Shown: one piece after another, positions 13,501 to 64,000 of the stretch | How the letters are laid out: each line of letters begins with the position of its first letter | Position numbering within the stretch: the first letter of the stretch is position 1 | DNA from: Thalia democratica | Lineage: Eukaryota | Length of the DNA: 64,000 nucleotides | NCBI GenBank assembly: GCA_965202585.1 | Contig: OZ241827.1 | Coordinates: forward strand, 77,748,001 to 77,812,000 | Direction of reading: 5' to 3' | Position numbers and translations under genes: made by a program | Notes under the pieces: generated by a model | Told to the model about the DNA's origin: nothing | Seen by the model: only the letters and a program-made list of their open reading frames with translations | The model's database searches: none

Positions 13501-13510
13501 AAGCTCGAAA
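4560..13510 (+). pseudogene. P2: about 9-kb decayed internal duplicate of copy A (about 20190-29500; exons 3-11)
   Basis: Colinear pseudo-exons: about 6457-6530 (acceptor base lost), about 7935-8070 (TGG>TAG, donor lost), 8413-8563 (intact), 8686-8909 (stop, -2 nt), 10071-10210 (TAA at 10163), about 10400-10615 (frameshifts), 10685- (TAA at 10699), about 10905-11131 (acceptor lost, 5-nt deletion), about 13455-13510 (fragment). Confidence 0.9.
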
Positions 13511-16500: not shown

Positions 16501-16656
16501 AAATATCTATTAAATACCTGTTATTTTTCTTTACAAAAAAAAAGTTTGAAATTGTTTTTATCAAATCGTATTTTTCTAAACTATTTTTTTTTACTTAGAG
16601 AAAAAGAAACAAACTAATTTAATAACATATAAAAAAAAACTTTTAATATTTTTCAG

Positions 16657-17240
16657 GACAAGTAGTTCTTGCTCGATCACTTGACAGAGAAACGGAGAAA
16701 TATTATTGGCTGACAATAGCATCACGTGATAAGCAGGGTTCATATCTATCTGAAGACTATATAAATGTAGCAGTGACAGTTATGGATGTTAATGACAACT
16801 ATCCAGTTTCTGACCAGCCAAGCTACAATATCTCGTTAGTTATATAGAACATGTTATGTTATAAATAAACTAAAATACCATAAAAAGAAAATTGTTTAAA
16901 AAATTAATATAAGTAACAGTGAAAAAAAATTTTAGTGAAACTTGTTTGTAAATAAAGCTGTCTTAAACTTTACGTTTATTACAAAACCTTAAAGTATCTT
17001 AAAAACTAAAAAATTTTGATTTGTAAATTTGTTAAAATTGTTATACTATATATATTTAAACTTTAAAGCAAATAGTTCCTAAAATTAAATTAAATGTTAC
17101 TTATTACAGTGTGGATTTGGGAACACCCGTTAACACTCCTATATTAAATATACAAGCTTCTGACAAAGACGAAGGTTTAAATGGAAAGTTTACATACACT
17201 ATCTTGAAAACAGAAATATTCAAAATAAACTCTGAAACAG
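16657..17240 (+). CDS. Copy A exons 1-2 (cadherin repeats about EC10b-EC11a)
   Basis: QVVLARSLDRETEKYYWLTIASRDKQG...VMDVNDNYP and SVDLGTPVNTPILNIQASDKDEGLNG...INSETG. Missed by the ORF track (too short); canonical splice sites. The first exon resembles FAT1 EC10 (LDRE..hYWLTv..tD), recalled from family knowledge. Confidence 0.9.
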
Positions 17241-38200: not shown

Positions 38201-41200
38201 CCTGTATTCAATCAAACAAGTGTTAGTTTTCAGTATCTAAAATGTTTTATGACTAAAAATCCGTTGACCGTTACTTATTTACTATAAAATTTACTCTACA
38301 AAGAGTGGTGTGCTCTACTCTAACAAAATACAAAATTTAATAAAGAAACCTTTTAATTGTATAATTAATATTAATCGACTCTTTTTTTTCAGTACAAAGC
38401 TGAGGTTAGGGAAAGTGCCAAAATTAGCCATCTAGTGGCAAAAGTTGAAGCATTCAGTTTAGACGATGGAGTAAATGCGGATTTGCAATACCTCATTGTT
38501 GGAGGAAACGAACTTAACAAGTTTCAAATCGACAGTAGATCAGGTATAAGAGAATGTTTTAAAAAATAACTACTTAAATCATTTATATAGTGACAACATT
38601 CAAATACAACTTTCATTCAAATACAGGAGAAGTTGTTCTTCTTGATGAAGTGGATTATGAGGTGAACAAATATTTTATGTTGACAGTCCGGGCGCAGGAT
38701 CTTACAGATGACCCACTTATGAGCGACACTTCTCTTAACATACGTGTCATTGACGTCAATGACAACAAACCTACTTTTAACAACATCAATTTTCCTGTGA
38801 GTATAAACTGTTTGAATAAAAAGGTTTAAATTAAAAGCTAATGTTTTTTGTCTTTCAAATTAAAGATATTCGAAAGTCGACCATTATTTATTATTTTGTT
38901 AAAAAGTTCAAATCTGGTCATAGTTCGTGCTAAAATCGTAATTTAGATTCAGTTTTCAAACAAGTTGTTAATTTCAGGTATTTGTCAACGAAGATGTCAT
39001 TGATGACGTCATAGCAACAATAACCGCTTTTGACAAGGACCAAGGCGCAGGGGGCGAGGTCAAGTACTCGTTGCTAAGCAACGAAGCGGACCAGCTGCCG
39101 TTCCAATTGGATGAGGACAGCGGTCGGCTGTCAGTGGTCGAACCGGGTCTCGACTTTGAAGCCCGCCGTTCGTACGCCTTTGAAGTAGTTGCCAGGGACA
39201 ACGGAACTCCTTCCCTAGCAACGAGCGTCGACGTCGCTGTCAAAGTGAGAGACGTCAACGACTGTCGACCGCGGGTGGCGCTCAAGAGTTTGCATGACAA
39301 CGTTGCGTTGCGTTGTCAAAGTGACGTCACGACAAAGTGCACTGCGAGCGTGTCGGAAGCAGAATGGAGAAACGTTTTTTCGGAGGAGGGCATAGTAACG
39401 GTAGGGGCGACGGATGATGACGTTGCCAAGGGAAACGCGGCCCCTTTTAAATTTAATCTCGACTCACAACTTGCAGGTTAAATAACTTGTTTGTTGTGTG
39501 AATATATTTATTTAGCTCAAACTTATTTATATAAGCATTTCAAAAAGCCCATTTCAACTTGTTAGTTAATGTACGGTATCTCTTTTTATACATGAAACAT
39601 AATTAAAAAAATTTTTTATGAACAAAAAATTAAATTAAACTTAACCATCTTCTTTTAACAGGTGAATTTGTTTTTAATGACAAAAATGTGCTGATATCAA
39701 ACAACCCGTACGAAATAGAAGACATTTCATCAGATAAAGCGGCTAAAACGTTCCATTTCACCATAACTGCTACTGACAGTGGAAATCTCGAATCTTTGCC
39801 TCTTTATTTAGAAGTTGTCATTTTGAAAGAAAGCAAGTATCCACCGGTTTTGATCTCTCAAAAGATTCAAATTATGACTACTGAAGGTTTGTTCAAATAT
39901 AAACTAATTTCGAGTATTATAAAAGGATTTTATTATAACAACCAACTTGTATACACAAAAAGATATATTAATAATTTAGCCAAACTTAGCTACCTTTTAT
40001 AATCATTTTACTTACTTGAATATTAATTATTCGTCTTAAACTAGTTTTTAGTTTTACTGTTCTGTTTCAGATTACTTCAAAGGAGGAGTAATATCTTCAA
40101 AGCTGTACGCCACCGACAAGGACCCCCACGACTTGCAGCGGCTCACTTTCAAGATCGACTCGCTCGCTGATTTCGAGTCGTTCACGGTGAACCCCCTCAC
40201 CGGCAAGCTGTCGGCGACCAATGGCGTGCGAGGTCGCCACAACGTCACGGTTGGCGTCAGCGACGGCAGCAGGTACTCGACGGGCCGGGTCGCCATCGAA
40301 GTGGTGAAAATTTCAAAGGAGTCGATTCAGAGTTCGGTCCAGGTCACTTTCGAGGGGATTTCCCCAGAAGCGTACCTTTCGACGGTTCACGGCAAATTTT
40401 TGGCGGCCCTCGGCGACATTCTTCCAAGGGGTTCGAACCCCGGTGAAAATGTTGAAATTTTGTCCCTGAAACGCATGAATGATTTCAATGCGCAGCTGGT
40501 GTTCAGCGTGAGGTCGCCGAAGCGTGACGGCCAGTACCTGAAAGTCGGCCGCCAGCTGAAGGACTCGCTGCCGCTGCTCACCGAGAAGGCGGGGGTGAGG
40601 GTTACGGACGTCAGGGGGGAGGAATGCGACCTCGAGTGCGCCCACGAGTGCCGGTACGACGTAGTTGTGACGTCATCAGGGGAAAGTCCCATCACCACGA
40701 AAAAGTGGAGCTTGCTGACCCCTCATTGGTTCGAACGCGAGGAGAAGTGCGTGTGCCGGAAAGGTCATGCGGGTGTGAATTGCGCTTCCGTTTGCGCTGG
40801 AGTAACGGACGTGTGCGAGGAAGTAGGCGGAAAGTGCGAGCTGGACGCGAACGAGGTGCGAGGCTACCGGTGCGCGCAGAAGATCCGAAGGAACAGCGCG
40901 GTTTCTTTCGGGGGAAATTCCCTGATCGAGTACAAGCTGAACAACCCTGAAGTGTTCAGTTTGTCGCTGAGGTTCAGAACCCGGCAGCGCGACGCAAAAC
41001 TGCTGGAGGCCGCGGAAGAGTCGGGAGGAAACTTGGCGCGCGTCAGCGTCGACAAAGGGAAACTGAAGCTGGAGTTCGCGTGCGGGTTGGACGGCGGAAA
41101 CATGCAATCCATGGAAATGAGCGAGTCGGAAATGAGCGACGGAAACTGGCATGACGTCACAATCGAACCCATTTCCGACAAAGATTGCGCTTATAGGTAT

Positions 41201-44200
41201 GAAGTTTTTATTAATATTTATTATTAAAATTTTTATCAAGATTTTGATTGTAAGTTCGTAAAAAACTTATGCTTGTTACTAAAAAGATATACTAAGTGAT
41301 AGTTTTCTGGCTTAGAGTTTTATTTTAGCTGCTTAGTCTTATTAGAACAACTTTTATTAATGCTAAAACATAACTACAAAAGATTGCGCTTAGATGTATT
41401 TAGCTTTAGTTTTCTTTACTAGTTATTTAGTTCTTTATCAGTTAGTTTTATATGTTTTTCTTTGCTAACTGTTAAAAAGCATGCAATGGATCTAAATTTA
41501 CCAATCAAGTTACGACATGTTGTTGTTAGTAAACATTTGCATGTACTATATATTGCTTTATATTAACTATAACTAATTTTGATTATTCTAAATAAATTTT
41601 TACAGGTTGGTAGTAGACAGTAAATACGAGGCTACAGGAGCATTGGGTGAGAACAAAAAAAGAAAATTGATATTTGACAAACTTACTCTCGGAGGATTAG
41701 ATAAAAATCATGATGGTATGATTGGATGCATTGAAGAAATTAAAATTAACCAAATTTTAATTCAAGATCTTCTTCATTACAATAAATTGAGAATTACTAA
41801 GAAACAAGAAGTTCTTGATAGGTTAGTTTCTGTTTCTATACTCTTTATACGTTAGAAGAATATATGGTTATGCTAAATAAAAACTATACGAAATTCCTAC
41901 TATGTTTAAAAAAAATGTATAAATCTAACTATTTTGATGCAACATAGACATTTAGTTTTAACAAGATGAATTTCATTGAAGTATCAATAAACAATATGTT
42001 AAAATCTACCTAATTTTTCAGATGTAGCATGAATATTGGGTCTTGCGTGAATCATTTTTGTTACAACGGCGGTAAATGCGGACTAGACATGTCTTTAGAG
42101 GGAAATTCCCCAATATGCAAGTGTAGTTCGGGTTATGCAGGGACTGATTGTCGCAAAAGGAAGGTTTGTGAAGACTTGCCGTGCAAAAATAAAGGAATTT
42201 GCCATTCACAAGCTGTTGAAAGTTTTAGGTTGGTGAAACTTAAAATAATTTTAGTTGTTTTAGTTATTTCCTCAAATATTCAATACTTATATTAATGAAA
42301 AAACTTAATCTTTCTTTTTGAACTTTCAAGTTAGTAACTAACTGTTTTTCATTTACATTTTACTAGTAAAGAATATGTTTAGTAATCTATGTCAAAATAA
42401 AAAGATGGTAAACATACTTTTTACAGATATGAACTTAATCTTTTTATGAACTTGTTCTTTGCTCACTTTTAGCAATTAGTAGTACTTTACTTATGGGATA
42501 TAAAAACCATTAGTTTTATCATTATCACAGATGCGAATGTAAAGAAGGTTTCGGAGGAGAATTTTGTGACGTCATATGCAAGGAGGGGTTCACCGGAGTG
42601 AATTGTGACGTCATAATAAATAAATGTTTCAGCTACGATGAAAATTTTGCATGCAACTGCTCTTTATCAAATGAAGGTAAGCTTTTTTACTATGGATATT
42701 TGCTTTGGATGTAGTAATATGTAACTACAAGCAACAAACTAATTTTGACTGCAAACATATTCTAAAATTTTTTATTGTAAAAAATTTGCTGCGAATAAAC
42801 GTAAAATTTGAAGTTTTCATGAGAAATGCTTTAAACACTTTTTTTTCATAATACGTAAAGTTTATTCAAATAAAACACTATGTTATCTTTTTAAGACGTT
42901 ATTTACTAATATTAAAAATATATGCTTTTAAAAGCTTAAGACTTTAAAATTCAACAGCAGTATTATAATCAACTACCATAGTATAATTTGTTTAATATGG
43001 ATTCTTAAAGACGACTTTATCACTTGTTTATTAAAACTAATCCTAATGTTTAAATAGGGATGTATTTTTGTCACGCAATATTTCATTTTTTTTATGTCAC
43101 GCAAAAACTTATTAAATCTACTATTTATTAAAAAGTAATAATAAGAACGTAATAAAATACTATTTATTAACTGTATGTGTAAAAAAAGTATAAAAAAGTA
43201 GGATAAAAAGTAGGTAGTTGAACTTGGAAAATTCATAGAAAAAAAAGCTTAAACAGTTGTAATTGTTTAAAATAGCTTATAAGTTCCAAGTCTAAAAATT
43301 TTAGCTGAAAATTCAAATCAACAAAATAATAATGATGCTAACAGGTTGCAAAACTATCCTAGAAAATCAGACCAACGCGAAGAAATCATCATTTCCTTAT
43401 TTAATCCTCATAATTGTTATTTTAATCGTCATAATCGTTGCCACCATAGCAACTGCAGTCGGCTGCTACGTAAGAAGGAGGCGAGGAAAAAAGATGCGAA
43501 CCGGAAGTACTATTTCCACTAAAGAAAAGTTTTATTTGACACAACTGAAACACAGAGAAGGTTTGAATGGCTTAAATTAATTAATTTTCAAGTTTAATTT
43601 TATATAAGTCTTTGAAGTTTAATTCATAAAAAGCAAAAATATTAACGATCTATAAAATGGTTTATTTCATAGATCACTCGTCAGATGGAAACCAGTCGAT
43701 TCCAAAGCCACCGATTCCTGCAAGGCCGGTTGATTATCAGAGATGTTCAAGAGAAATTATTGACAGCATGGTTGAACAAGTAAATATAAATATTGTTATA
43801 TATTCAGTTCTTAGTTTACAGTTTGCATACTTCTAATTACTACAATTTAACTATTTAATTATCTGCTTTTAAAAAATTTTCAGTTGAAAACCAAAAATGA
43901 AATCAACAATTTATCGTTAAAAAAATTAATTACATGTTTTAAAATAATTTTCCAGGAGCTAAAGAACAGGAAACAGTCAAGTGACGTATTCGACAAAAGT
44001 ATGACGTCATTCCAGGACAATGAAAAATTGACGTCATACCAGGATAATGGAAAGCTGACGTCATTGGCTTCCGATTCAACTTCGTTTCAGAAAATTCCCA
44101 TGTCTTGGACTGACTATGAGCACAATCATGTAAGTAATATAATTGTTAACACCAAAAATATTAGCTCAATTTGAAGTTGTTATTTCTGTTAATTAATTAT

Positions 44201-47179
44201 TATAGTTCACACCTGTAAACTGACACAATGGTTATTATATTATTTTAACTATAATAAAAAAAACACAATCTTTATATTTATAAGTATGATTAAATAAAAT
44301 TTTAAGTTATTGTAAGCTTTCACTGACTGTTCATTAAAACTATAATTTATTTTATTAAGTATATATGTAATTTCGTTTAAACAAAATGCTTCAACTAACT
44401 TTTAAACCATCACAGTTCAGCGGAAGTATATCTGGTTGTTCGTCTTACAGCAAAAGAACTCCGATCCCGTCTGCGAAATCACCGAAACTGTTCACCAGGA
44501 TTCCCAGATTCCAGCAGCAGTCAGTTCACAAAGTAGCAAGCAGTCCATTGCAGAACAGCGTAAGTTTTATAACAGTAGTCGAGTGGTAGTCAGGCGTAGA
44601 CTGATTCTTTATTAACTTTTTCAGTGGACTTTCTTGTTATTTTCTTTTTATATATTATTTTAATACACTTTTCTCTGTATTTTTAGCAGTGTTTTAGACT
44701 CTAATAATAATAATATGATTTTTTCGGAAAACATTTAAAAAAATCCAATAGTTTTTTTTAAAGCTTTTTTTTATTTGAAAAACATGTTAGTTCTCACTTT
44801 TTAAAATTCTTATAATGTAAAATTTTTTTTAAGACTTGATCTCTTATCATGTATAATTGTTAATAAATTGATTCAATCACAGTTCTAAAATATTAACAGT
44901 ATGTTAGCTAGACGTAGATATACACTGATTTTGTTTTAATTTTTCAGTAAACCTTTATAATTTTTAGATTTTCAAATTCTAACATTTATTTTACTTTATT
45001 GTATCTTTTGAAGAAATTTTTGATTCGTAACGTATTTTTATTACAAGATATACTTACAAGTTTAAAAATATTTAATATCTAATTTCAGTTCTAAACAAAG
45101 TTAAAAAAATATTAATTTTTGATTAGAACATCTTTAAAATGTAAATTTTGTAACTTTGTTTTTTTTTTCTCACTGTTTTCTTAACTAAAATTTGTTTAAC
45201 CACAGTTTTGTAATTCTAAACAGTTGGAAGAAAACCAAAAAAATTGAATTTAGCAGAATTCAACCGTAATACAGGTCTATAAATAAAAAGCTTGGTTATG
45301 GTGATTTTTGTACAAACTTAGCATGTACTCAAAAACGTGGTGTTAATCATTATAATAAAATAACTTCAACTGCTTTTCCTGAAATTATCTGAATTTTGAA
45401 AGTTACTTGTTTATGTTAACTTTCAAAATCTTTAACATGAAAGACTTGTTAAAATTACATAAAACATTGAAAAATAATTTTGATTTCATATAGTTAGGTA
45501 TATCCAGTTATAAGCTTTTGCTTTATGTTTCAAAATTTAAGTATAAGTATGTCAACTATTATTATCTATCCTGTTATACTTAGTGGTTTTACATCTGTTG
45601 TACTGTTGTTTGTTTTTAAGTTTTATTTTAAAACTCTCATCTAAATAAAAAATTTCTAAGTTTACCATGATTATTAAAAAAAATGTGTTAATTTATCTGA
45701 CTTCAAAAATTTTAGTTTTTATTCTAAACGTATTTTTTTAAACTCAAATGATAACACTTATTTTAACTGCCTTTCATTTTTAGCATGTAAATTATCAAGT
45801 TGTGATGAATTTTATTTTTCGTTCAAAACAAAAGTTATTAATGGTTTTATTAGGTTGTTATTTAGTAATTCGAAAAATAACTTGTTACTTTTGTATCGAA
45901 ACCCCAAAGCATGTTGATAAATCTCATAGCATGTGGTTTTTGCATGTGTATTATCATGTAACTTGCATTTATTTCAGTATGTTATATCAGGTTTTTCTAA
46001 ACATGTTTATTTTTTTTACAAGAAGTTGTTTTATTAATTGCATATTTTGAAAAGAAAATTAGTTATCTAAATAATTATTAAAAAGATTCTTAAGAACCCA
46101 TTAACTTTTTAAACTCAATGATAAAATGTTAACTTTCTATGTTTAAATTCAAAAGAAACTTAAAAAAAGTTGTAAAAGTTTCTAAAACTCAATTATAAAT
46201 TTTGACGAATCCTTTTTAATACTTAAATAATCTTATTCACCAGATTACGCATGGGACGTTTCTGATTGGATTAAAAACAACTCGTCGGCGGCCAATCACG
46301 TTCCTGAACATGTGACGTCAGTACCAGTGAGGCTGAACAACAGATCCGACGGTGTTACGTCATCAAACAATCGCGTGACGTCACATTACAATTTGGCTGG
46401 GAGAAAACCGAAAAGGAAAGGGAGAAAATGCAGCGACGCTTCCACAACAGATTCAAAACTGGTTTGTATAAATTTATAAACTTAAAAAGTTATATAAGTC
46501 TAAGTATATATATCTAGACATAAAATAGACAATTAAATTGGAAAAAAAATTAACATTTGAAGCTTTTATATTATAAGTATATAAATATTTACGTAAGTTA
46601 CAAGTCAAGATCATTAAATGACAAAGTAATTATTTATTAGTTTTGATTCGAGTGTTTATTTTTTCAAACCAGATACGTCATCCGCAAGACGACGAAAGCT
46701 CCCAGTATGACGTCAGTAGCGAGGTTACGACGGCTGCCAGGCAACCCGGGCGCTTATTACGTAGCAGCTATGACGTCACCAACCCCCGATTCGAACCTTC
46801 GAACCTCCTGCCATCCGTTTCCATGGAGCACGAGCGTTTCTCATTGGACGAAAAAATCTCTGAGACCTCGGAGGATTTCTATGACGACACGGACGAGTAC
46901 GAAATTTCCGCTCCGATGCCCACCGACATTATGACGTCACTTTTGGAGGGCGAGATGGAGGTGGACATGCCGACTCCGGCGAGGGCGCGCAAAAACAAGT
47001 TTCACCCCGACCAGTACCTGCCCGCCGTCGTCACCATGGCAACCAGTTCCTCGTCGTCGGTCGACGGTGACGTCACTGTCCAGTTGCTTGGCAACCAGCT
47101 GCAGATGTCGTCGCTTTCCGACTTGGAAGAAGATGACGTCAACAATTCGTTGATGTTACGTCATAATGACAACGCTTGA
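16657..47179 (+). CDS. FAT1-like: FAT1/2/3-type giant protocadherin, copy A; 5'-incomplete in window (EC10b-EC34, EGF, LamG, EGFs, TM, cytoplasmic tail), about 3,555 aa visible
   Basis: Hand-threaded GT-AG exons with compatible phases and no in-frame stop: 16657-16834, 17110-17240, 22116-22183, 23708-23871, 24185-24335, 24531-24756, 26022-26161, 26334-26550, 26617-26714, 26873-27107, 29377-29632, 29701-29934, 30038-30326, 30430-30855, 30966-31121, 31259-31417, 31533-31938, 32095-32306, 32608-32859, 33042-33189, 33344-33564, 33630-33816, 34158-34285, 34385-34526, 34838-35001, 35238-35301, 35529-35683, 35827-35984, 36234-36467, 36544-36724, 36797-36946, 37079-37220, 37290-37390, 37469-37601, 37771-37913, 38123-38221, 38393-38543, 38627-38796, 38978-39476, 39662-39886, 40071-41196, 41606-41821, 42022-42228, 42531-42676, 43345-43560, 43673-43779, 43956-44129, 44451-44559, 45224-45274, 46244-46461, 46673-47179 (TGA). 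Repeated LDRE/LDYE, DxD and DxNDN motifs. A single LamG and YxWDxSDW point to the FAT1/2/3 subfamily rather than FAT4, Dachsous or CELSR (family knowledge). Confidence 0.93.
22116..24756 (+). CDS. Copy A exons 3-6 (cadherin repeats)
   Basis: GQIYTAKELVP..., VNMEDKGVPSLSSQV..., IKAYGTHQ...IDENTGVIHT, VKATDKYSNEAFVQ...; phases 1-0, 0-2, 2-0, 0-1 join correctly. Confidence 0.88.
26022..27107 (+). CDS. Copy A exons 7-10 (cadherin repeats)
   Basis: DGNEDLMFFLHPNSG..., IEDKNDNQP...SANDAD, LNRERQ...VSDQGSP, LNDVNEHTP...AVDDDIGRNG. Confidence 0.9.
28980..29070. promoter_or_regulatory. Candidate intronic cis-element conserved in A, P1 and P2 (TTATGACGTA core)
   Basis: AAGTCC(C/G)ATTATGACGTA(C/T)G(A/G)CTGTT...ATTTGCTGAAAACAAA(C/T)AAAAGCACAAA retained at about 4020, 13095 and 29005 while the flanks are barely alignable. 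Confidence 0.4.
29377..33816 (+). CDS. Copy A exons 11-22 (cadherin repeats)
   Basis: Includes LDYETRRDY, VTDVNDNRP, TDRGSPPL, LDRETNSY, DVNDNAP, LDREKQDTY, QDENDNPP, IDREEVSQF, DDVNDNPP. Confidence 0.93.
34158..38796 (+). CDS. Copy A exons 23-38 (cadherin repeats)
   Basis: QDVNNNKP, ASDNDIGVNG, LDYENKNY, EDINDNPP, LDRENY, LDREEKDSY, LDVNDNWP, TDVNDNAP, VDYEVNKY, IDVNDNKP. Confidence 0.93.
38978..39886 (+). CDS. Copy A exons 39-40 (late cadherin repeats; exon 39 GC-rich)
   Basis: AFDKDQGAGGEVKYSL...LDFEARRSY...ARDNGTPSL...RDVNDCRP; ITATDSGNL. Confidence 0.93.
40071..41821 (+). CDS. Copy A exons 41-42: last cadherin repeat, Fat membrane-proximal Cys-rich region, EGF-like domain and laminin-G domain
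   Basis: ATDKDPHD...VSDGSRYS; CDLECAHEC...CVCRKGHAGVNC; LamG signature SFGGNSLIEY...SLSLRFRTRQRDAKLL...DGNWHDV...LVVD...LTLGG...GCIEEIKIN. Confidence 0.93.
42022..42676 (+). CDS. Copy A exons 43-44: EGF-like repeats
   Basis: CVNHFCYNGGKC...CKCSSGYAGTDC; CEDLPCKNKGIC...CECKEGFGGEFC. Confidence 0.92.
42538..42615 (+). repeat. 39-bp coding tandem duplication (CKEGFxGxxCDVI x2)
   Basis: TGTAAAGAAGGTTTCGGAGGAGAATTTTGTGACGTCATA / TGCAAGGAGGGGTTCACCGGAGTGAATTGTGACGTCATA. Confidence 0.85.
43345..43560 (+). CDS. Copy A exon 45: transmembrane helix and basic juxtamembrane stop-transfer segment
   Basis: YLILIIVILIVIIVATIATAVGCYV (about 43398-43472) followed by RRRRGKK. Confidence 0.92.
43673..47179 (+). 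CDS. Copy A exons 46-51: cytoplasmic domain
   Basis: PKPPIPARPVDY (43702-43737), YAWDVSDW (46246-46269), KFHPDQYLP (46997-47023), stop TGA 47177-47179. Exons 48 (44451-44559) and 49 (45224-45274) are inferred from phase logic and are the least certain. Confidence 0.82.
44001..44065 (+). repeat. 27-bp coding tandem repeat, about 2.4 copies (MTSFQDNEK / LTSYQDNGK / LTS)
   Basis: TGACGTCA recurs at 44002, 44029 and 44056, with similar CAGGA(C/T)AATG spacers in the first two units. Confidence 0.85.
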
Positions 47180-47250
47180 AAAACTTTACTTTTGAGAAAC
47201 ATTCCCTCTTTTCTCGTTTTCAGTGTCGAAGTATTTTTGCTGCTGCTTGA

Positions 47251-49899: not shown

Positions 49900-50754
49900 C
49901 TAAACAAAGCAGACAACGTTCTGCATGAGTGAGTGGAGTCGAACCGGTGCAATAATCAGTAAATTAACGGGAGAAAATCCGCAGACATCCAACGTTACTT
50001 GCCAGATCGTGGATTGTAAATCTAAAAGCTGACTAACTTATTAAACTGTGGGTGGCGTGATCGCTTTAATTTTATTAAATTTGCGCACGAAACAAATTTA
50101 CTTCGTTTTTTAGGATCAGCAGAACATAAAAAGTGCGTAGGTCAAATATGATATTTTAGATGATAGAGACCTGAAATTTTGAAATTGCTTACAAAAGTTT
50201 GTTTAAATACCGAAATAAAATTAACGGTCCTGGAAAGAAAATTTTCACTTATTCTAGTAACTACAACTGTCAAGGATTATAAAGACAACTAGCTAAAATT
50301 TCATTCAGAAAAGTTTAGTGCTGACGTACTTTAAAATTATTTCCATCGTTTATTGGTTGCATGCAAGCGATCAGACTCTAAATTGACCAATGGGGGTATT
50401 TCTTACAGCGCAGTATCAAAAGGAAGCTTAGATGAAGACACTCTGTTTGTGGTGGACAAAATTAGTGGGTCAATTAGATTAATGGGTCGTTTAGAGGCAA
50501 GAGTTACAGGCTAAGGATAAGAGCAAGAGATTTTACAGGGAAGAGCACTCAAGCCAGACTGGTTGTCAATGTGTTGCCTAGTAACCTTTGTTCGCGTAAT
50601 GGCAATATGAAAAATAAACTGACCATGACAAATGTAATTGAAATAACTTCCCCTGGACAAGAGGTTGGTACCATAAACACTACTAGATCTGATGTTGTTT
50701 ATGACATCATAGATGGTTCGGGAAAGGGAGTTTTTAGAGTTGATCGATATACAG
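49900..50754 (+). pseudogene. Decayed upstream exon(s) of copy B (about EC8-EC10a of Fat)
   Basis: Cadherin text across shifting frames: MSEWSRTGAIISKLTGENPQTSNVTCQIVD; TVKDYKDN*LKFHSEKFSADVL* (stops 50290, 50332); IVYWLHASD; FVVDKISGSIRLMGRL; KSYRLRIRARDFTGKSTQARLVVNV; YDIIDGSGKGVFRVDRYTG followed by a GT donor at 50755 in phase 1, matching the phase of the exon at 54771. Confidence 0.85.
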
Positions 50755-53700
50755 GTCGGTAAAAGATTGATTAAAAGAAAATTCTAGTCCTAAAATAAGT
50801 ACATACTTTAAAATTTTATAAGAAAAAGTTAACTTTTAGTATTTTAACTTTATCAATTGTATTTAATGTGAATAACTTTTAATCTGAACTTTTTAAATCT
50901 AGTTTTTACTATTATGGACAAGTTATTTTCAGTTTAAAATGTTTTAGTAGTATCATAACATGGTGTGTATTTTAAATAATAACTAGCCTGATTTTTCTTG
51001 TTTTCATAGTTAATATATCCTCTTTTTATACTTTTAAAACTGTCTAAGGTTCAAAGAAAACATAATATAAATTTTTAGTTTTTATAAAAATTTTGCACAT
51101 AATTTTAAAGTTAGAACATAAAAGATTTAATTAATTTTACATATAAACATAAAATCCGATTTTAATTAATTTTTTAAAGTTATTTTATTTTTATCTGACA
51201 ATCAAAAAACTTTCTAAAAAAGTTTTTAAATTTTAATTTTTTCAAAACCCAAGGTTTAAGTAAACAAGTTCAGTTGAATTTAATGAATTTTTGTTCAAAC
51301 AAAACTTAAATAATTGTTTTGGAATTTTATATATTTCTTAAACAGTCAAACAATTGTTTGATACTTTTTGTTGAATCGTGACTTGTTCATGTTTGCATGT
51401 TTTGTTTTTCATACAAACAAGCAGTAATTGCATACCATACATTTAATCTTTAATTGTTTGTAAATGTTTATAAACTATTGTAAAAATTTCCAAGTCTCAG
51501 TATATATAAACGTTTAAACTACCATAACATTTTATTCCAATATTTATTTTAACAGTTTATTACTAACAAAACTATGTTTTACTCCAATACTTGCATATAG
51601 GAGATCCTCAGTTGTTGTAAATAGATCTGAAAAATATTTTTTGAACCAATGAATGGAAGTTCCATACATAGCTAAACAATAAAATTACATAAAAGTTTTA
51701 TAAGTTTAAAGACAGTGTAGTTATATTTGTTAAATTTACTTATAAACAAGGAAAGTATTTTTTGATAAACAAAAGCTTTCAATGTATACATATTAATAAC
51801 TTGTTTAAACGATCAAGAAATTCTGCAAAAACAACTACTGATGCCTTCTTATTGAAGATTATCGGTGTAAATAGCAAAAAGAAAATTTATTTTTCTGAAA
51901 CGGATGTGCTCTATAAAGCTTGTTTATCACTAAACCTGGTTATTACGTCACAGTAGTGCCCTTAAGCTGCACTAGTAATTTCTCCAAAAATTTCAATGAA
52001 GCTACTTGATGAAGTGAAACAGTTATGATGCTTGATTTTTCTTACTTGAATAAAAAGCTTATACAGACATCCTTAAAAAATATATGTTGTACAAGCATTT
52101 TAAATATTATTGTTTGTCTATTGTCTAGTTTTATCTGAAGGCAGTTATGTACTTATAAAACAAGTTTTAAAACTTACTATAACAATATTTTTATTGTGTT
52201 TCTTTTTTTTTAAAGAAATAAACAAATTAAAACACAAACTTATTTTTGTTCTATGTTTAAATTTTTGGATTTTATTCTTTAAATATCATAAAATTACTTG
52301 AGGTTATAGTCGTTCTCTTATCTTAGGAAACAAAATAGTTTGAATAAAACGGATTCTTACTTATATTTAATGACAAATAAAGTGCAAAATTTTTATCTAT
52401 GCTAATCTTTAAAGTTACAGTGATCTTAAACCAAGACTATCAAGAAAGCACAGATTTTTGCTTTTTTTTTTCTTTATTAAGTTTTATCTTCGAAAAAAGG
52501 TAAAATACTGAATTCTTAATCGATTTATATGACAAATTTCTTTAATATATGATTTGAAACATTTATGAGAGAGTAATTTGAAGTTGAATTAGATTTTTTT
52601 AGTTAAGCCAAGTACTAAGATATTTGTATTTAAATTTGATGCTTTTGCTTCTGTTAAAGTTTTAGCTGCTACATGAGCAATTAATCTTGTGTAATTGAAA
52701 CAAAAAGACAAAAATGCAATAGCTAAATACAGGTAAAAAGATTCAAGAAAGTGTTTTAAATTTGCTTAAAGTTTCAATTTTGGTTGAAAATTTACAAAGA
52801 AGAATTAAACACGAATAATAACAACAAAAGAAATAAACTTTACCCGCTAAATACACAAATGAGTAGAATGGTGAATATTTGAAGCTTGTTTAAGTTACAC
52901 AAAAGATTCTCGACAGTTTATAAGTATTTGTGCCAACAAAAAACTACTTTTCATTTCAAAAAGAGCAAGAAAATAATGGTAGGGTGGGGCATGAGCCATA
53001 CCTTTTGTTTAGGAAGTTGAGTTTATTCAACGCAGATTCTTAATTTGAAAGAATAGAATAAATTAACACCTTATTATTCTCTCCCTTTTTGAAGTCATGC
53101 TTAGTTGGGTTTTAGCTCGTTTTTGTTGTTTTTGTATTGGTAGAGTTTGAAGAAAATTTAAAGTCTTAAGTACAAATACACAACTTTTTTATTCTAACAA
53201 ATTTAATTTTTGTAAACCAAAAACAATCTTAGAAAAACTTTTGAATAACCAAGTAGCGAGAATACTTTTTATAAAAATAATTTTAAATAATAACTAATAA
53301 TTTTTTGTATATAATCCATCCATTTTGTATAAAAAATCTTAGTATTTCTTCTATGAGAATTACTTCACAGTTTCAGTATTATTTTAATTTTAAATGACAG
53401 CAAAACATTAAGTCCCATGATAATAAAAATCGGTCAACTACGTACAATATAAAGCATTAAAATACACATCAAATTCTAGTTTGACACAAAAACTATCATG
53501 TTGAATTACAGCAGAGAAAATTTCCTCAAAATGACAGCGGATATGTATACAAAAGTCTCATTTGTCAGCTGTTTTCTTTTATGGTGCACTTGTTTTTAAT
53601 TTAAGATGACAGGCAAAAACTAGAACTTAAACTTCGGGCTCTTTGTCTAAAGAACAATTTCAGTCAAAATTTTAAGTTTTTTTTCCATAAAGTTCTTTCC

Positions 53701-54770
53701 TGTGTTAATGCATATAACTTATATCAGATATTCATTTTTGCAAAATATCAATTTGAAGTAATTTTATATTTTTGTATCTAATTCACCCAGTTAGTATAAA
53801 AAATCTTAGTATTTCTTCTGTGAGATTTACTTAACAGTTTCAGTAAAAAAACAAATAGTTGTAAAAACATAAAAATTTTGAACACAACTACTTTACGATA
53901 TTAGTTTTATTCAATATATTATCTTTAAAAAATGGTTTTTGAAAATAAAAATCTACTAAAAATATACTGACTGTAAAAAATGTGTGAAAAAATTCTATCA
54001 GTAACATATGTATGCCCTTAATTAATTTGATACAGCATATGTTTTAAATGATCCTGTTCTTTTTTAGTTTTACTTAAATTCAAGTAATTTATCATTACGC
54101 CTGTAAGACTTATTTATAAACAGAAGCATACTGGAAATATGTTTGGACATGCTTTTTTAATTATTTTTTTGTGTTGTCTGGTTTAGGAATTACCTCCTAC
54201 TTAATCCTTTTGAAATTAAGTTTTCTTCAATAAACATTTTGTAGCTTTATTTGTGTAACTTTTTTTCAATTTTAAAATGCAATTTTCTCAAGCTAAGTTA
54301 TTATTTTCGTTTAGAAGCATTCAAGTTTACATATATTGTGTTATGTTTCTTTTAATATATTTAGCTAATAAGGTACTATGACTATTCTCTCTTTTTTAAA
54401 CATTAATTATGATCTAAATAATAATCGAACACGTATTTTTTGTACTGATTATTATAAACAACAATTTTTTTCTATTTTGAAAATATAACTTTTGAATTTT
54501 TATCAAGGTGTTTTTTTTTAATTCAGTTTAAAAAACTGTAATCATTTAGAAAAAAACAACATTTAAAACTTATGATAAAAATTGTAAACAATTAGAATTA
54601 AATTGTCGGAAAAAAATATATCAATATCAGTTACTTTTGTTTACATAAAAAAAAAGTTAGAAATTATTTTCATCAAATCGTATTTTCCTAAACAAATTTT
54701 TACTTACTTAAAATAATAAAAACAAATTAACTTAAAAACATGTTAAAAATAGACTTTTAATATTTTTCAG

Positions 54771-57700
54771 GACAAGTAATTCTTGCTCGATTACTTGACA
54801 GAGATATGGAAAAATATCATTGGCTTACAATAGCAAAACGTGATAAGCAGGGTTCATATCTATCTGAAGACTACATAAATGTAGCAGTGACAGTTATGGA
54901 TGTCAATGACAACTATCCAGTTTCTGACCAGCCAAGCTACAATATCTCGTTAGTTATACAGAACATGTTATGTTATGATTAAACTATAATAGTATTAACT
55001 GCAAATTGTTTTAAAACTAAAAAAAAGGTACATTAAAACAAAAATTTTAGTGAAACTTGTTTGTAAATAAACTTTTTTTTTACTTTACGTTTATTACAAA
55101 ATCTTAAAGTATCTTAAAAACTACAACATTTTAATTTGTATACTTGTTAAAAAATTTATATTATTTATTTTTAAACGTTAAAGCAAATAGTTGCAAAAAG
55201 TAAATTAAATATTAGTTAATTACAGTGTGGATTTGACACCCGTTAACACTACTATATTAAATATACAAGCTTCTGACAAAGATGAAGGTTTAAATGGAAA
55301 GTTTACATACTCTATCTTGAAAACAGAAGTATTCAAAATAAGTCCCGAAACAGGTCAACTTTAAAAGTATTTATGTGTTTGTTAACTATTTTTGAAGTAC
55401 AGAAAATTTGTAAAAAAAAAGTTTATTAAGCTAGCGTTCAGCAACATTAAAGGATTAAAAATTAAAATTTTAAACAGAAAATGTGTTATCCATTTAGTTG
55501 ATATAGGTCTATTAGAACATTTTTAATATAACTGTTTATAAAAATTTATAATTTAAAAAAACAACAAATAAATTTCATAGTTTTATATTTTAAGTTCATA
55601 GAAGTTGTTTTGTTTAAATTTATAAAACCCCTTAGCTCATATCTATTTTTTAACGTATGTATCTATTTTTTTGTACTACTTATAACCTTTATTGTTTATT
55701 AGTATAAGATATTTATATTTACCGTTTATTAGTATAAGATATTTATATTTACCGTTTAAATAATGAGTTTGTTGGTAAATTACTATAATTTGTAAAAAAT
55801 ATTAAAAACTATGAGTTTAAGCGTATGTTAAAAAAGATCCAAGCGAAACGAATTCACTGGAATATGTAATAATAGTACAAATCGCTCAACATTCTTTAAT
55901 TTTAAAAACAACTTATATCAAGTAAATTTTTTATGTAGTTAAACTTCATCTTGTTGTAGTAAATCCATATTAAAAAAACATGCTTTCTGACATAATAAAA
56001 AAAAGTTAAAATTCAAATACAGTTAAAGGCAAAATCATTAGCGGAATATAATCAAATATATTCTCAAACTGTTTTTACTGTTACTGCTGATATTTTGTTA
56101 AAAATTTTACGTAGTAAAATTTAGTACATACATCATAAAGTTCAACGCGACGTCAAAATTTTTAAACGTGGTTTTTTGTCATTTTAATTAGTTTTTGTCT
56201 ACTTTTGTATGTACTTAGCTGAAAAATGTAGCCATGTAAAGGTCAAAACGTTTGTCAATATTATAGGTATGCTAACGATAGTAATTAGTATTTAAACTTA
56301 AAACATAGAATGCACTTGTTAAGTACACTCTCAAATAACACGTTTGGCTACAACCAAACGTACACTTACGAATAAAACAATCTGCTAGAGCTATAACGAA
56401 TTCGGTTACATCAAAAAAATATAAGTTTGACTAAAAAGATACTGAGTTTTACACACTTATATCTGTTTTAAATTTATATTTAATTAAACATTGTTTCCTT
56501 TGTTGTACATGAAAATTTAGATATACTATCAAAAATAAATATGTAGATTGATTCTATAATAAAACACAATATTTAAGTTGTAAAATGTTAACAAGATTTT
56601 AATAAAGTCTCAAAGTTGAAAAAACAAAACTTATATGACCTGTAAGTCACAATAAAAACTAAATTCACTCACAATACCCTGTAAGATTACAAAAGAAACC
56701 CAAATTAAACAAGTGAAACCGCTCTCACAGAAAGTGAGCTAATCCCTATTTACTTTTACCGTTTTATTTAGCTAGTCAAAAGCTATTTTGAATGTCTTTT
56801 GTAAATCAGTAGCGCGTAGAAGTAAAAAGATGACATTTAAATTTACGTGTGATTAGACATATTAAAAATCGCGGTGTATATAAAAAGCTAATTCCAACCG
56901 GATGTTAATAAAGTTGTTAAATTTAGTTTGTCAAATATAATTTAATATAATACTGTTAAAAAGCAATAAGTGAAATATAAAGTATTTTTTTTAGTTTAAG
57001 TTATCCTAAACCAAGCCTATAATTTGGTAAAACTGTTTATTTTTATTTTGAATAAGGGGTTTGTTTGATAAACTGATGTCTGGCTGGTTTATTTTATTTC
57101 AAAAGCTTTGAATTAATATTTTAAAACACATTTAAAGTGTAATATATTCTTTTTAAACTTCAAATATCGTTTTTGCTTAAAAAAATTTTTAAACTATCAT
57201 CTACACAAATAAGAATTTTATAATAAAAATAACATTGACATAGTTTTGGTAATAGAAATGTATACCTAAATTGTGTTCCACAATAGTGTAAAAAACTACC
57301 TATTTATACTTAAAAAGTAAAAATAATACACATACCTGTTTTAGTAAATGCGCATAGGTTGTGCTTAACACTTTAAAAATTACCTTCAAAACATTAAATT
57401 GCCATAGAAACAAAAGAACCGAAACAAATTGTAAAATTGGTCATAATAGCCAAGAGTTTGTTTACATTCACTAGGAAGATCAAACGCAGTTAAACTGCTC
57501 ATTTAACAATTATTTGTTTTAAAGCAACAATGGTTTGTAAGTGAACTTGTTTTGATTTGAAACATTGATCTAATTAAAAAAGACAACATGTAAAGTAGTA
57601 ATTAATTCCTGTTCATTTGATCCCTACCAATTATGCATAGCAGAGGTTAATTTTGTAAGCAAGTATTCTTAAATGATTCATAACTTAAGAAAAGATGGCT

Positions 57701-60700
57701 GTAAAAAAGTCACAGTTCATTAACTCAAATTTAAAAAAAAAATCGTAAATAAAATGTACATTAATTTTATCAAAGATAAAACATATCAAAAAGGAAATAC
57801 ACTTTTTTTTTACAGAGATTTTTAATTAGCATATCAACATCTTTTTTACACTTAGAGAATTATCTGCTTAAAACACTTACAGTCTTTTATTTTGTTTAAT
57901 TCAAAGGCTAAAAGAAATGATTAAAGTTTTCAGTTTTTAAGTAAGATAGCAATTGCTTGTGTTAATTAAGTTAAATTTGATTTTTAAATGATTTTACAAA
58001 ACAATATTTGTTTAATCGTACTATGTGTATTGTATCAATTATTGTTACGAAATATTGAATGAAGCTTTTAAATAAACACAAAACTTTTATTTTAAAAAAT
58101 CTTGTTTGTTCAAGAAATCATTATTCTTCACCAGTTTAAAAAAATCACATGTTTTTATTATATACGATTAGGGATTGTCTACTCAATGAAACACGTCAAA
58201 ATATTTGTGTAAACCACAATTACTTTAAAAATCTGAAATTCATCTGATAAAATAATAAAAATAAAATTAGAATTTTTTACATTTTTTTTTGGTTGAATTA
58301 AAACATAAAATTGGTAATTTATCAACTAATTTTATTGAAACGTCAGTTATGTAGATAAACAAGTATATATAATTCCTAATTAACAAAACATGGCATATGC
58401 ACTGAAGTAACCTCAAACTGAATGCAGCAAACATAAATTGATTGCTCTCAAATCTAATACTTGCGTTTAGTTTTAAATTTACAAATTAGATCTTATTATC
58501 ATTATTTTTGACAAATTTTTTTTTAAACTTTATTAAATACAAGAATAAACTTTTTTTAACTCTAAAGGTAAAAATTAAAACATTTCAAATAAAACTTTTC
58601 TGTCATAAAACCTACATTTTGAAATGAACAGTTATTAAATACGTTGTCAAAAGTTTTATACTGACTTTTAAAGTTGATTGTATCCTGTATTTTTATGTTT
58701 TTAGCAATCAATAACACTAAAGATTATTTGAAAACTCTAATGAACAAGATCTTTTGAACTATTTTACGGGTTGTTTGATGAGGTCAGACTTTGAATTTTC
58801 GTTTCCTTACAACAATATGCATTTGACAGCAAAAATATAAAAATTTGATATTAGCAGCCAGGTGTTTTATTTTTAATTTAAAAGATATTATAAAGTTACT
58901 ACTTCAACACCTATTTGTTTGTCTTAATTATTTGAAATATAAAGCTTACTTAACAAAACAAAGTGTATGTGTTTAACATCAAAATAAATTTAAACTAGTC
59001 TGTATAACTTGTTTAAAATGTAAACCTAAAATAAATAATTATTTTCATTAACTTGGTTTTCTGTGGTGTATAATTTATAAAATTGAACAGAAACGTCGTT
59101 AAACAATCGTTTTTATTAAATAGTTAAAATACTGACTATTACTGTAAAGTTCATAATATATATGTTATTCTTTACACTCGTATATACAGTAAAATAAACG
59201 ACTGTTGAAAGGAAATCTTTTAAAAGCTTTAATTACTTTATTTTTCTAAATGGAATCAAAAACAAAAAATATTAAAAAACTAAAAACAATCTAAAGAGTA
59301 ATACACTTGATGTTATAACACAGTTATAAAAAGTTGTACGACAACAAAAACAAGTCAGTTAAATTTTTGACAAAAACTTCTTGTGTTTAAAATAAAACTA
59401 CAGTAAGGTACATAGGATAATAATAAAAAAGAACAAATAAAAACGTTCATGCAAAACTGTTACTTCTCAGCAGGAGACTAGTTTACAAAATATAATAAAA
59501 TTTAGACAACTTGGGTGGTTACTTCAAAGGAAACCATAAGTCTTAAAATATTATTTTACCTATAAACTTTATAGAATTGTTTATTGTTTATTACCACAAA
59601 GATAAACAAATAACGTAATCGTAGAAGAGTAATTTATCATAATTTGTTGTCTTATAAACATTAACCAAGTGGTTCTGTTTATTAACAAAAACGCTACCCT
59701 AGCTTATATTAAGATTTAAATAAACATAAGATTTTAAAGTTTTAGTTAATTTTTATTACGTTTTTTCCTTTATATTAGCTTATATTAAATAATTAAATAA
59801 AAAACATTTTTAAATGAAATTCTTTTTGTGCTTTTAAAACAGCTTAAAGTATTTAAAGTTTTGTAAATGAAAAACATCAAAAAAAGTATTTTAATTTTCA
59901 CAGCATTCCCACGCTTTGTAGTTCTGTGTGATTTTACCGCAATTATGACGTAATTAAGAATATATAAATTGAATTTGTTTAAAGCCAAGTTTCTGTACAA
60001 CTAAACAAAACTAAATGTAATTATGTATTTGTGTATTAGGATAATTTATAAACTACTTTTACAATAGTTTTAACTCTATTATTTAATAAACTGAAAATAA
60101 TTAAAATGAACAAAATGTTTTAAGACTAGAGTATACGTTAGGTAAATAATACTTGTATTTTTATTTATTAATTCTTTTATAATTGACAAAGTTTAATTTT
60201 ATTAACATTTATACGTAGTTTCTCTATAAATTAAAAAAAGACAACGTTTAATAACTAATAGAAGAAATAAGAATGTTAATTAAGAATTAGTTTATTTTTT
60301 CAAATGTTTAATTTTTAATGATGTAGTGTAAAACTAAATAAAGAAGTAATTCTTAAGTTTTATATAAAAAGTAAACTAAAAATTAGTTATGTTTTACTAT
60401 TTTTTTACCTGTTTTAAATCTATTTCTAGGTCAAATTTACACTGCAAAAGAGCTGGTACCAAATGTACTTGATGGATTAAAACAAATTTCGTTCGTTGTA
60501 AGTTTTAATTCAAATATTCATGAAACTATTTATAAAGTTTAGTCTAAACTCAAGATTTTATAATGTAATATGACTCAACTTAAAAGCATAAGTTTTAAAT
60601 TTTAATCTTCATTTAGTTTTATAATGATTTCTGAGGTTTTCAATTTACAAAAAACTGAACGTAATTTTTTTATAGCTGTGTTGATAGATATATTTATCTA

Positions 60701-63072
60701 TCTTTAAAAGGTAAATGAGTGGAGTATATTTTATATCTTAAAGTAGCTTTTTTGTTTAAAACTTTATTTAAATTCTTGATTGTATTTAAAATTGTTAAGA
60801 TTAAATAACGTAATTTCAAAAATTACTTAAAAAATAGAGAATACTTAAAACTTATCAAAATTTTGTTCAAAGTTACGATTTTATGACGTAAAAAAAAACC
60901 CCGTCGTGAAATGAACTGTAAATTTTTGACACAATTTATTTTTTTGTATTTTTGCATAAATCTATATTATTGAACTCTTGTACAATTGGTAACTTCATAC
61001 TGAATAATAATGAAAACTTATTAAACTTACTTTATTTACTTTAAGTTTAATTGAAGCTCCTTTCTTCTTTTAATAATGTTTGTTATATAATACCTAAATA
61101 TTTGTACTAAACTACTAAAAAAATGTTTTTTTTTTTTGGTTTACTTGTTGTACACATTTTTAAGTTTAATTAATCTTAAATAATGATAAGTTTAAACTGT
61201 ACTTAAATAAAAAGCTAAAATAACTTTTATATTTTAATTACATTTCAAAACTAGAATACAGAAATTGACAAAAAGTATAAAGCTAGCTCTACTTTTTCAT
61301 GTTTTCTTATAATATTAACAACTTTATCTCAAAGGTTTATGTTGCTATCAGAAAAACTTCTACTTAACAATACATAATATTATCAAACAAATTCTAATTT
61401 GACATATTTAAAAAGTATTTTAGCAAACAATCTACACAATATTAGCAGTAAATTTAAATTCGAATTACTCATAAAATTTTCGACAAATCCTTAAAAAAAA
61501 AATTCTTTCTGATGACAGTTTCCAGATTTTACACTTTAAATTCATAATTTTTTTATTACTAGATTCTTAAGCTCTGCACTTATGTATTCTTTTTCTATGA
61601 CCTTACTGATTAAATAAATCAAAAACCACTAAAAGAAAGCAGTCGATTTATTTTCTTCGCGTAATTAATTATGACAACAATAAATATTTCAAATTGACCT
61701 TGACTTACGATTGTTTAGAGAAAAGGTTTAATAGTTTAAATAAAAAAGTTTTTACTTTTCCAAGAAAAACACTTGTGTTTTTAATTAACCAAAAAGTTAT
61801 AAGCAAACAACTTTATAATAAATATCATGAAGTTTAATGCTATTTTATTTACGGTTTATTTAGGAAACTGTTTTGTATTTTTATCTATAATGCGTTTTCA
61901 AGCTAGGTAAGTTATCATAATTAACTGATCATAAATCAAGTCGTTTTATTTTCACATGAAGTTAGCTTTAGTAAAGAACATCTACTGTTTACTAACAATT
62001 ATTAATTTTTTTTAATTTGTAAGGTAAATATGGAAGATAAAGGAGTACCAAGTTTATCATCTCAAGTTTCAGTGACTATAAACTTTAACCAGAAAAACTT
62101 TAATGAAGGTGGACTTTTTATTTGGTCAGATAATAATTTATTGTCGGATATTCGGTTATGGAGAAACGAACAAGATTCACAAGAAATGTCAGTTGTTAAT
62201 TTAATTTTGATTTTTTACACGTTTATTTAATTATTAAGCCAAAAAAAAGTTTCCTTTTACGTTTTTGTTTAATTTAAATAAGATGAATTACAATAAAATA
62301 GTGTATAATTACAAACAATTATTTTAACCAACTAAAGTATTAGTTTTTTATCTAATTTTTTGAAACTTTACGAAAAAATTTATAGAGTTTTTATTGATCT
62401 GTTTTATTAGAAGTTAAAAACCCTTCGATTTTTAAATATTAATGATGATAAATAGGTCTAATGAAACATTTAATACCATTATGTTGTATTTAAACTACAG
62501 AATTCGAATAAAAGCATATGGTACTCACCAAGAAGCAGTAAATATTAAATACTCATTGATTGAAACGTATGATTACATAATAGATGAAAATACTGGAGTT
62601 ATACACACAAGTAGCAGCAACTACCAACTAAACACAGTGAAAACAATTAGGGTAAATTTTTAGTTAAAAGATTTTCTACTGTAAGTGTTAAAAAAAAATT
62701 TTAGCAGAGTACTTTAAATTTAAAAAAAGTTTTATACTTACTCTAAGTCCTTAATTATTACTATAGTGTTAGAAAAGAAGATTTTCTGCTTTTTAATTTC
62801 TTTTTAAGTCAAAATTAAATTTAATCGTTAGAATAACTATTTACAGGTAAAAGCAACGGACAAGTATTCTAATGAAGCTTTTGTACAATTAGCCATAACC
62901 TGGGTTGAACGACCAAGCTTGCAAAGAAAGTCTAAACTTGCATTTGAAGAGAAAATTCATAGGTACAAACATCAGGAACATACGAGTTTCAAACCTTACA
63001 GTGACAGATTTATAGCAAACATCAAACATGTAAAATCAATAAACAACAAAAACTTGCAGTATATGTTAATTG
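54771..63072 (+). CDS. FAT1-like: Copy B of the Fat cadherin: six intact exons paralogous to copy A exons 1-6; continues beyond window; coding status uncertain
   Basis: Exons 54771-54948, 55226-55353 (in-frame 3-nt deletion), 60430-60497, 62024-62187, 62501-62651, 62847-63072. Splice sites are preserved and there are no stops or frameshifts; about 22 amino-acid differences from A (hand count). Confidence 0.75.
55695..55754 (+). repeat. Perfect 30-bp tandem duplication in a copy B intron
   Basis: TTTATTAGTATAAGATATTTATATTTACCG x2; the copy A equivalent (about 17525-17580) has a single diverged unit. Confidence 0.9.
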
Positions 63073-64000
63073 GTTAGTAAAAAAAAACTATTCTGTGCAA
63101 GTATAACATCAAAAAAAAAACTTCGCGATAAAAAAAAATAAGTTTTTTTTTGATAAATGTTTCAATAAAACATCTCTATTTTTTGCACAACACAACTACA
63201 TGAATAATTACAGTTGAGTTAGCTCAAATCTAAGATATTATGTTTACTAGTTATGCATAAAAATGCACTCTAATTAAACTTCGACACATTATAAGAGACA
63301 AAAATGTTGTAGTTAAGTCACATAATAAAAAAATACTTAAGGTTCTAACTCGAAAAAAGATACTTACTTTGTTTAGAAAAACTTTACTAGCTTTTTTGAT
63401 AGCCTTGAAAGAAATTTTAACATTATATAAACTAATAACATCAGACGAAAACTAACAAAAACATGTTATTATGTATCATAATAAAAGTTAATGTGTAACA
63501 GAAACTTCTAATCCGACAACACATTGACCCGATAATCAGACAAAATAAACCGATAATCCGTCTAATGCGGTTTAACACTGTTAACTAAAATATTTTGATA
63601 GTTCTTAAAGTTGTTTATCAAAAAAGTTATATTTACTAAGTCAAACATAGTTTGATAATTGTTGCTTAAATCTTTTAAGTATTTATTTTTTATTTAAAAG
63701 AAACTTAAATTTATACCTTTTAAAACTGAGCGCAGCTAAACAAATTAATTAACTTTTTATTTTATGTTTTCAAATTGAATAATTATTTTTGACTCTCACT
63801 CGTTAAAATCTTACACATAAGTAAAACAACAATAAATGTTGTAAAGTATAATTGACACAACCCTTAAAAACACATTCATTTTTGAGAAAGCAATTGATCA
63901 ACTCAATCGATTTTTTGTCACCAGAGAATATCAATTTACTGCAGCTTATATCCGCCTCAAATGTAAAATATTTACTTTATATAAAAGATTTTGATTAATT

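Follow-up and report, generated by a model that had tools for sequence, protein, structure and literature searches.

A 5'-truncated tandem copy of a Fat-type cadherin gene in Thalia democratica is probably a young pseudogene

The window analysed here is a stretch of 64,000 nucleotides from the pelagic tunicate Thalia democratica (GenBank assembly GCA_965202585.1, contig OZ241827.1, positions 77,748,001 to 77,812,000 of the forward strand); all coordinates below count from its first letter. Self-comparison and homology searches detect in it a single gene family on the + strand, giant cadherins of the Fat1/3 type, and self-BLAST gives the layout as two old copies, Y and Z, followed by copy A and then by copy B. 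Our subject is copy B, which combines a broken head exon with a run of six clean body exons. We conclude that B is a 5'-truncated tandem duplicate of a Fat1/3-type gene, and that it is most probably a pseudogene of recent origin in the course of decay rather than an alternative module of that gene. The reading draws on the state of its head, on the pattern of substitutions in its body as compared with copy A and with relatives from marine metagenomes, and on the uneven divergence between A and B.

Head and body of copy B

The head relic lies at 49900-50756 on the + strand and is what remains of about 2.5 cadherin repeats (EC8-EC10a), as recognised by tblastn, three-frame translation and a cadherin hidden Markov model (HMM) that we built from 884 repeats of 30 Fat proteins. 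By tblastn, its 50209-50756 part is collinear with residues 680-883 of Ciona intestinalis protocadherin Fat 1, body exon 1 carries on at residue 882, and head and exon 1 together align to residues 680-942. The HMM recovers three pieces of the relic, one in frame 1 (50365-50496) and two in frame 0 (50499-50573 and 50631-50756), with a frameshift near 50490-50505. Two in-frame stops (DYKDN*LKF and DVL*NY) fall on sites of the DxNDN-P and V-x-E-N motifs that are occupied by ordinary amino acids in relatives, and over 49900-50200 no frame stays open in any of the three translations. A preliminary description of the sequence had spoken of several stops and frameshifts in this exon; like its other statements on the sequence, this is confirmed, with two or more nonsense codons and a frameshift present. 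The phase-1 donor of the relic, G|GTCGGT at 50756/50757, is still intact. Nothing Fat-like leads into the relic from upstream in the window, and a protein search with the open 94-aa fragment of the head returned no match, so that the head has no intact comparator. Between the relic and body exon 1 lies a spacer or intron (50757-54770, + strand), of which the part from 50757 to 52784 resembles no other sequence of the window.

The homology between A and B starts at 14782 in A and at 52784 in B, that is, in the intron upstream of the EC10b exon, where it had been placed before, and it runs to the window end. It sets A 14782-25687 against B 52784-64000 at an offset of about 38.3 kb (self-BLAST and MAFFT alignment), and one block of 10.7 kb shows 89% identity when exons and introns are counted together. 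Overall the two copies differ by 11%, with 84 indel events; their introns were co-duplicated and are 81-98% identical. The left flanks are unrelated, with Y and Z standing before A and the head relic before B.

We rebuilt the six-exon model of the body by hand, independently, from the A/B alignment, and all exons lie on the + strand. Exon 1, which encodes EC10b (A 16657-16834, B 54771-54948), starts in phase 1 in both copies, as had been claimed, and ends in B at the donor GTTAGT. Exon 2 (A 17110-17240, B 55226-55353; B donor GTCAAC) carries in B an in-frame deletion of 3 nt at 55238 that removes a Gly codon, and exon 3 (68 nt; A 22116-22183, B 60430-60497) has the B donor GTAAGT. Exon 4 (A 23708-23838, B 62024-62154) has an alternative donor of the same phase at 62220 in B, and the stretch that separates the two donors does not differ between the copies. 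Exon 5 (A 24185-24335, B 62501-62651) is given by the alignment and the gene model, and exon 6 (A 24531-24756, B 62847-63072) is the last B exon in the window, its following intron running past the window end. Six is the full count to be had here, because the seventh exon of A (26022) corresponds to B sequence beyond 64000. An HMM-guided gene model reproduced five of these exons without any deviation and gave exon 4 the later, same-phase donor.

Across the six exon pairs every acceptor is AG (12/12) and every donor GT (12/12), and both frames are open, which bears out the earlier statement that the exons behind the wrecked one keep their splice sites and frame. Equally sound was the claim that the in-frame 3-nt deletion is the only indel: the loss of the Gly codon is the sole exonic indel between A and B. 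Exon 1 differs at 11 of 178 nt, with five amino-acid changes derived in B, where the motif reads LDRDMEKYH; exon 3 encodes the same peptide in both copies, its 3 nt differences being all synonymous; and exon 6 differs at 11 of 226 nt, mostly non-synonymous on the B side. In the window, B comprises pieces of about four cadherin repeats besides the relic of about 2.5 (cadherin HMM). Only six of its approximately 49 exons fall within it, with 883 coding nt in total.

Substitution patterns and exchange between copies

A protein search with the frame of A exon 1 returned, at 86-91% identity, four clusters of open reading frames (ORFs) in the marine metagenomes of Tara Oceans, and their contigs L001-L006 (PRJEB4352) can be aligned to A and B at 72-87% over exons as well as introns. 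When L001 is taken as the outgroup, the relationship of A, B, L003 and L004 comes close to a star. Contig L003 is broken: exon 1 has lost 14 nt at its beginning, and exon 2 has lost 1 nt. This B-like contig comes from one and the same sample as L004, which is intact and constrained. In the Tara assemblies the Fat exon 1-2 segment occurs in at least four different versions. L001 and L002 are about 99% identical, though they come from different samples.

Unpolarised, the ratio of non-synonymous to synonymous divergence (dN/dS) between A and B is 0.36 by Nei-Gojobori and 0.46 with the local mutation spectrum, which excludes neutrality of both copies (p = 0.015). We dropped this ratio as a test, since it does not separate constraint on both copies from constraint on A with neutrality of B. 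Changes were polarised instead, by the decayed copy Z (4867-13511, + strand) for exons 3-6 and by the Tara contigs L001, L003 and L004 for exons 1-2. A protein search with exon 6 gave no match, and hence Z is the sole outgroup for exons 3-6. With Z as outgroup, A has 7 synonymous and 3 non-synonymous changes in exons 3-6 and B has 2 and 7; among singletons in exons 1-2, A has 3 and 3 and B has 2 and 6. When all six exons are pooled, the synonymous and non-synonymous changes number 10 and 6 in A (omega 0.19; p = 0.0013 in a test against neutrality) and 4 and 13 in B (omega 1.04; p = 0.62 in that test), and the two sets of counts differ (Fisher p = 0.037). Copy A is clearly under purifying selection, and the former coding sequence of B shows a neutral pattern, at low power.

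The rate of substitution in exons relative to introns, for which we counted changes unique to one sequence on terminal branches, points the same way. The ratio is 0.37 in A, 0.40 in L004 and 0.23 in L001, as against 0.86 in B and 1.42 in the frameshifted L003; B differs from the constrained pool at p = 0.033. Changes derived in B also touch cadherin motifs. The calcium-binding LDRE motif has its E changed to D, and in the Y-x-L-x-V-x-A-x-D strand Y became H and S became K. The Gly that B lost is kept in A and in all Tara contigs covering exon 2 (six other sequences compared), and B exon 1 scores 8 bits below A against the cadherin HMM. Three independent measures, with small numbers, thus concur in suggesting that B resembles the broken metagenome copy and not A. 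The lack of detectable purifying selection on its exons speaks against a role as a module, although the power is low.

Divergence between A and B is markedly uneven. Outside exons it amounts to 14.5% for A 15.4-20.4 kb and to 3.5% for A 20.4-25.7 kb (chi-square p ~1e-77 for heterogeneity between the two segments). The blocks ignore exon boundaries: in the low-divergence segment exons have diverged as much as introns, and there is an uninterrupted match of 279 nt. One duplication event cannot yield two such ages, and sequence was therefore exchanged between units after the duplication. A related pattern is seen in the dead copy Z, where a patch of 186 nt within the exon-6 relic (Z 8724-8909 against A 24571-24756) is 93% identical to A, with flanks at 60-71%; it has the appearance of a conversion tract that entered a pseudogene. 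Mosaic and patch together point to gene conversion or unequal crossover. The A-B difference in exon 6 (4.9%) lies above that of the intron just upstream (2.2%), and over exons 3-6 synonymous-site divergence (7.8%) exceeds intron divergence (3.5%); a boundary of a conversion tract may lie near 24.5 kb.

These observations can be accommodated by the following course of events. The tandem duplication that gave rise to B would have had its left breakpoint within the large exon for EC8-EC10a and its other one some 2.7 kb beyond the stop codon. From that moment the head fragment would have been left without promoter, signal peptide or acceptor, and it would then have decayed, the downstream body meanwhile drifting with no protein-level constraint that can be detected. 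About 20 substitutions and one indel are all that have fallen on the 883 coding nt of B in the window, leaving them still clean. From about 58.7 kb onward, B would have been recently overwritten from an A-type unit, or exchanged with it, by conversion or unequal crossover. The head has decayed far more than the body, which fits with A, itself headless, offering no donor sequence for the relic. In this scheme B would not be expressed as a protein, and conversion rather than selection would keep it readable.

The survival of six exons without a lesion is not remarkable under neutrality. A neutral substitution in these exons has a chance of 0.067 of creating a stop, and about 20 substitutions in B would leave none with a probability of about 0.25. 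Escape from a frameshift has a probability of about 0.19 for B with indel rates matched for homopolymer context. A deficit of indels, considered as a sign of constraint, was set aside as weak once matched for sequence context (3.9 exonic events expected on both branches, 1 seen). We place the overall probability of a lesion-free run at roughly 0.05-0.25.

Several points weigh against reading B as a pseudogene. The lower end of that range, about 0.05, is the joint neutral probability of neither stop nor frameshift in the six exons, computed with rough indel rates. The counts of substitutions are small and the 95% range of omega in B, about 0.3-4, admits moderate constraint. In the older segment the exons of A and B differ by 6.2%, well under the 14.5% of the introns, and part of this low divergence could reflect past constraint on the ancestors of B. 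An omega near 1 could also come from diversifying selection on an alternative module, and the outgroups, Z as well as the Tara contigs, could have taken part in sequence exchange with units of the A or B type.

Alternative explanations and known systems

The alternative that fares best, though we consider it unlikely, holds that only the 3' two-thirds of each unit, which for B fall beyond the window, are functional, perhaps with an internal promoter producing a shorter Fat isoform, and that the head and first body exons seen in the window are a decaying 5' zone. Decay in B does lessen from 5' to 3': no frame survives in 49.9-50.2 kb, two stops interrupt 50.2-50.5 kb and 50.5-50.76 kb is open, and further on exons 1-2 differ by 6% from A with a neutral pattern, exons 3-6 by 3.5%. 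Conversion tracts that become sparser near the border of the A-B homology would, however, be expected to leave the same gradient, and a type I membrane protein requires a signal peptide, of which none is evident.

A second possibility is that B and units like it are autonomous genes, which acquired a new promoter and first exon in the block just inside the A-B homology (B 52784-53672, A 14782-15560, + strand). This upstream block is 92-93% identical between the copies, against 81-86% for the neighbouring intron, and it is not a known RNA gene, because Rfam and tRNA scans of the window gave no match. It holds a candidate phase-1 mini-exon, MLSWVLARFCCFCI, at B 53097-53139 and A 15093-15135, whose peptide is identical in the two copies, with ATG and GT in both and the correct phase; with exon 1 spliced behind it, the N-terminus would resemble a signal peptide. 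Such hydrophobic ATG-to-GT mini-ORFs of the right phase are nevertheless common by chance (5 of the 15 in 3.1 kb of A are equally hydrophobic), and a scan for a new first exon upstream of exon 1 produced candidates at chance level only. The conservation of the block may be another conversion patch, the B branch evolves neutrally, and the product would open with half a cadherin repeat that could not fold, all of which makes autonomous genes quite improbable. In B a local duplication of 94 nt (53282-53375) interrupts the block, and a direct duplication of about 110 nt at 83% identity is seen between 53266-53378 and 53735-53845, where A has the sequence only once (15654-15731). The block also contains an ATGACAG motif repeated thrice and a TGAGTCA site.

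More doubtful still is the idea put forward as the headline of the preliminary description, namely that a common set of EC1-EC10a exons, situated left of the window, is joined by splicing to exon 1 of A or, with all of A passed over, to that of B, so that a single N-terminus would be combined with either of two C-terminal modules of about 3,500 aa. In its favour, the acceptor of exon 1 is intact and in phase 1 in each copy, none of the six B exons has lost its frame or its splice sites, and A is constrained with no head exon within 16.6 kb and so is served from farther upstream. But B has an omega of about 1.0 and an exon rate close to its intron rate, unlike A, and we regard the proposal as disfavoured on these grounds. 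In B, moreover, a conserved Gly is gone and the LDRE motif has changed, and splicing would have to skip 49 exons and the 3' end of A over more than 38 kb. The fallback offered there, a promoterless pseudogene kept clean by gene conversion, fits better with the mosaic divergence and the conversion-like patch in Z. An assembly artefact, with A and B being haplotypes or a collapsed or expanded repeat laid out in tandem, has only the general risk of repeat-rich regions in its favour and is barely credible, as the falsely duplicated haplotype that had been a worry is excluded by the 11% difference, the 84 indel events, the unlike left flanks, the mosaic divergence and the paralogue-like versions in independent Tara assemblies, two of them in one sample.

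Expression of truncated Fat units, or at least of their 3' two-thirds, as alternative 3' modules spliced from shared upstream exons or from starts inside the units appears improbable. Were it true, a single tandem array would provide this animal with a whole family of Fat variants, and the omega near 1 of B in EC10b-EC13 would mean diversification or a dispensable 5' zone, not death.

Shared 5' exons with arrays of alternative 3' modules are known from Drosophila lola and mod(mdg4), where each module is under purifying selection and found in transcripts; the layout of the clustered protocadherins and of UGT1A is the mirror image. Like the modules of these Drosophila loci, A and B are tandem units that each open with an acceptor of the same phase (phase 1, intact AG). 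Unlike them, B evolves neutrally and spans 38 kb and about 49 exons, and the only phase-1 donor seen is that of the dead B relic, a common shared donor being absent from the window. A selectable alternative module of 3,500 aa, if true, would diversify a giant receptor for adhesion and polarity in a manner without precedent.

The pseudogene reading has closer parallels. CYP21A1P beside CYP21A2 and the pseudogene copies of human PKD1 are unprocessed pseudogenes homogenised by conversion with a functional neighbour. B shares with them that it is a copy that kept its introns, that one end is truncated and disabled (two stops and a frameshift in the head), that its divergence is patchy irrespective of exons and that its substitutions are neutral. 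It differs from them in that the unit is very large (about 38 kb, about 49 exons and about 3,500 codons) and in that the six body exons available bear no disabling lesion; A, the presumed functional partner here, differs from the functional partners of those pseudogenes, being itself without 5' exons within 16.6 kb. B is a fresh example of an already known kind of event. The evidence favours an ordinary process on an unusual scale, with tandem amplification of a truncated 38-kb segment, patchy homogenisation and slow decay, and gene conversion appears to reach even long-dead copies. For annotators, the lesson is that long runs of clean exons are no proof of function. Our literature search found no description of Fat arrays in tunicates.

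Copy A and the older copies

The body of copy A extends over 16657-47179 on the + strand in an HMM-guided gene model of 49 exons and 3538 aa, which ends at a TGA stop codon (47177-47179). The model was obtained with a dynamic-programming exon chainer that awards a bonus for matches to the cadherin HMM and admits GT-AG introns only. Ab initio chaining without homology guidance was rejected, as it skipped small exons or split the gene into more than 100 micro-exons. The predicted protein has 25 cadherin repeats in order, followed by laminin G, EGF repeats, a transmembrane segment and a tail; the corresponding modules of B fall beyond the window. Pfam matches are PF00028 (Cadherin) and Laminin_G_2, the latter at 40052-41224; Cys-rich EGF-like exons stand at 42.0-42.7 kb and the hydrophobic transmembrane segment at about 43.4 kb.

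The closest full-length relative in a library of 1.8 billion proteins is the Ciona protocadherin Fat 1 (XP_018670260.2, about 30% identity). The A model matches its residues 885-4287 in a single collinear BLASTP high-scoring segment pair at 29% identity, and the top match of a 391-aa exon in protein collections is at 40% identity. With its single collinear match to Ciona Fat1, the body of A looks intact. In contrast to Ciona Fat1, neither A nor B has a signal peptide or EC1-EC7 in the window, and EC8-EC10a is broken in B.

The body of A begins in the middle of a repeat, in phase 1. Upstream of its exon 1 the window contains nothing that encodes EC1-EC10a or a signal peptide, only the decayed Y and Z, and the missing exons of A may sit outside the window.

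The window is strongly AT-rich (26% G+C overall). Some exons of A (38900-41250 and 46600-47180) are far richer in G+C than the rest of the gene; over 40-42 kb the value is 43%, against 22-30% elsewhere, and long frames are open on both strands there.

Copies Y (3450-4526, + strand) and Z were delimited by self-comparison as old, decayed copies of the A 20457-29527 region. They are about 60-80% identical to it and stand head-to-tail upstream of A exon 1. They end at nearly equal A-equivalent points (29527 and 29504), within the A exon at 29377-29632. In Z, several exon relics are still open, and the exon-6 relic carries a 2-nt deletion.

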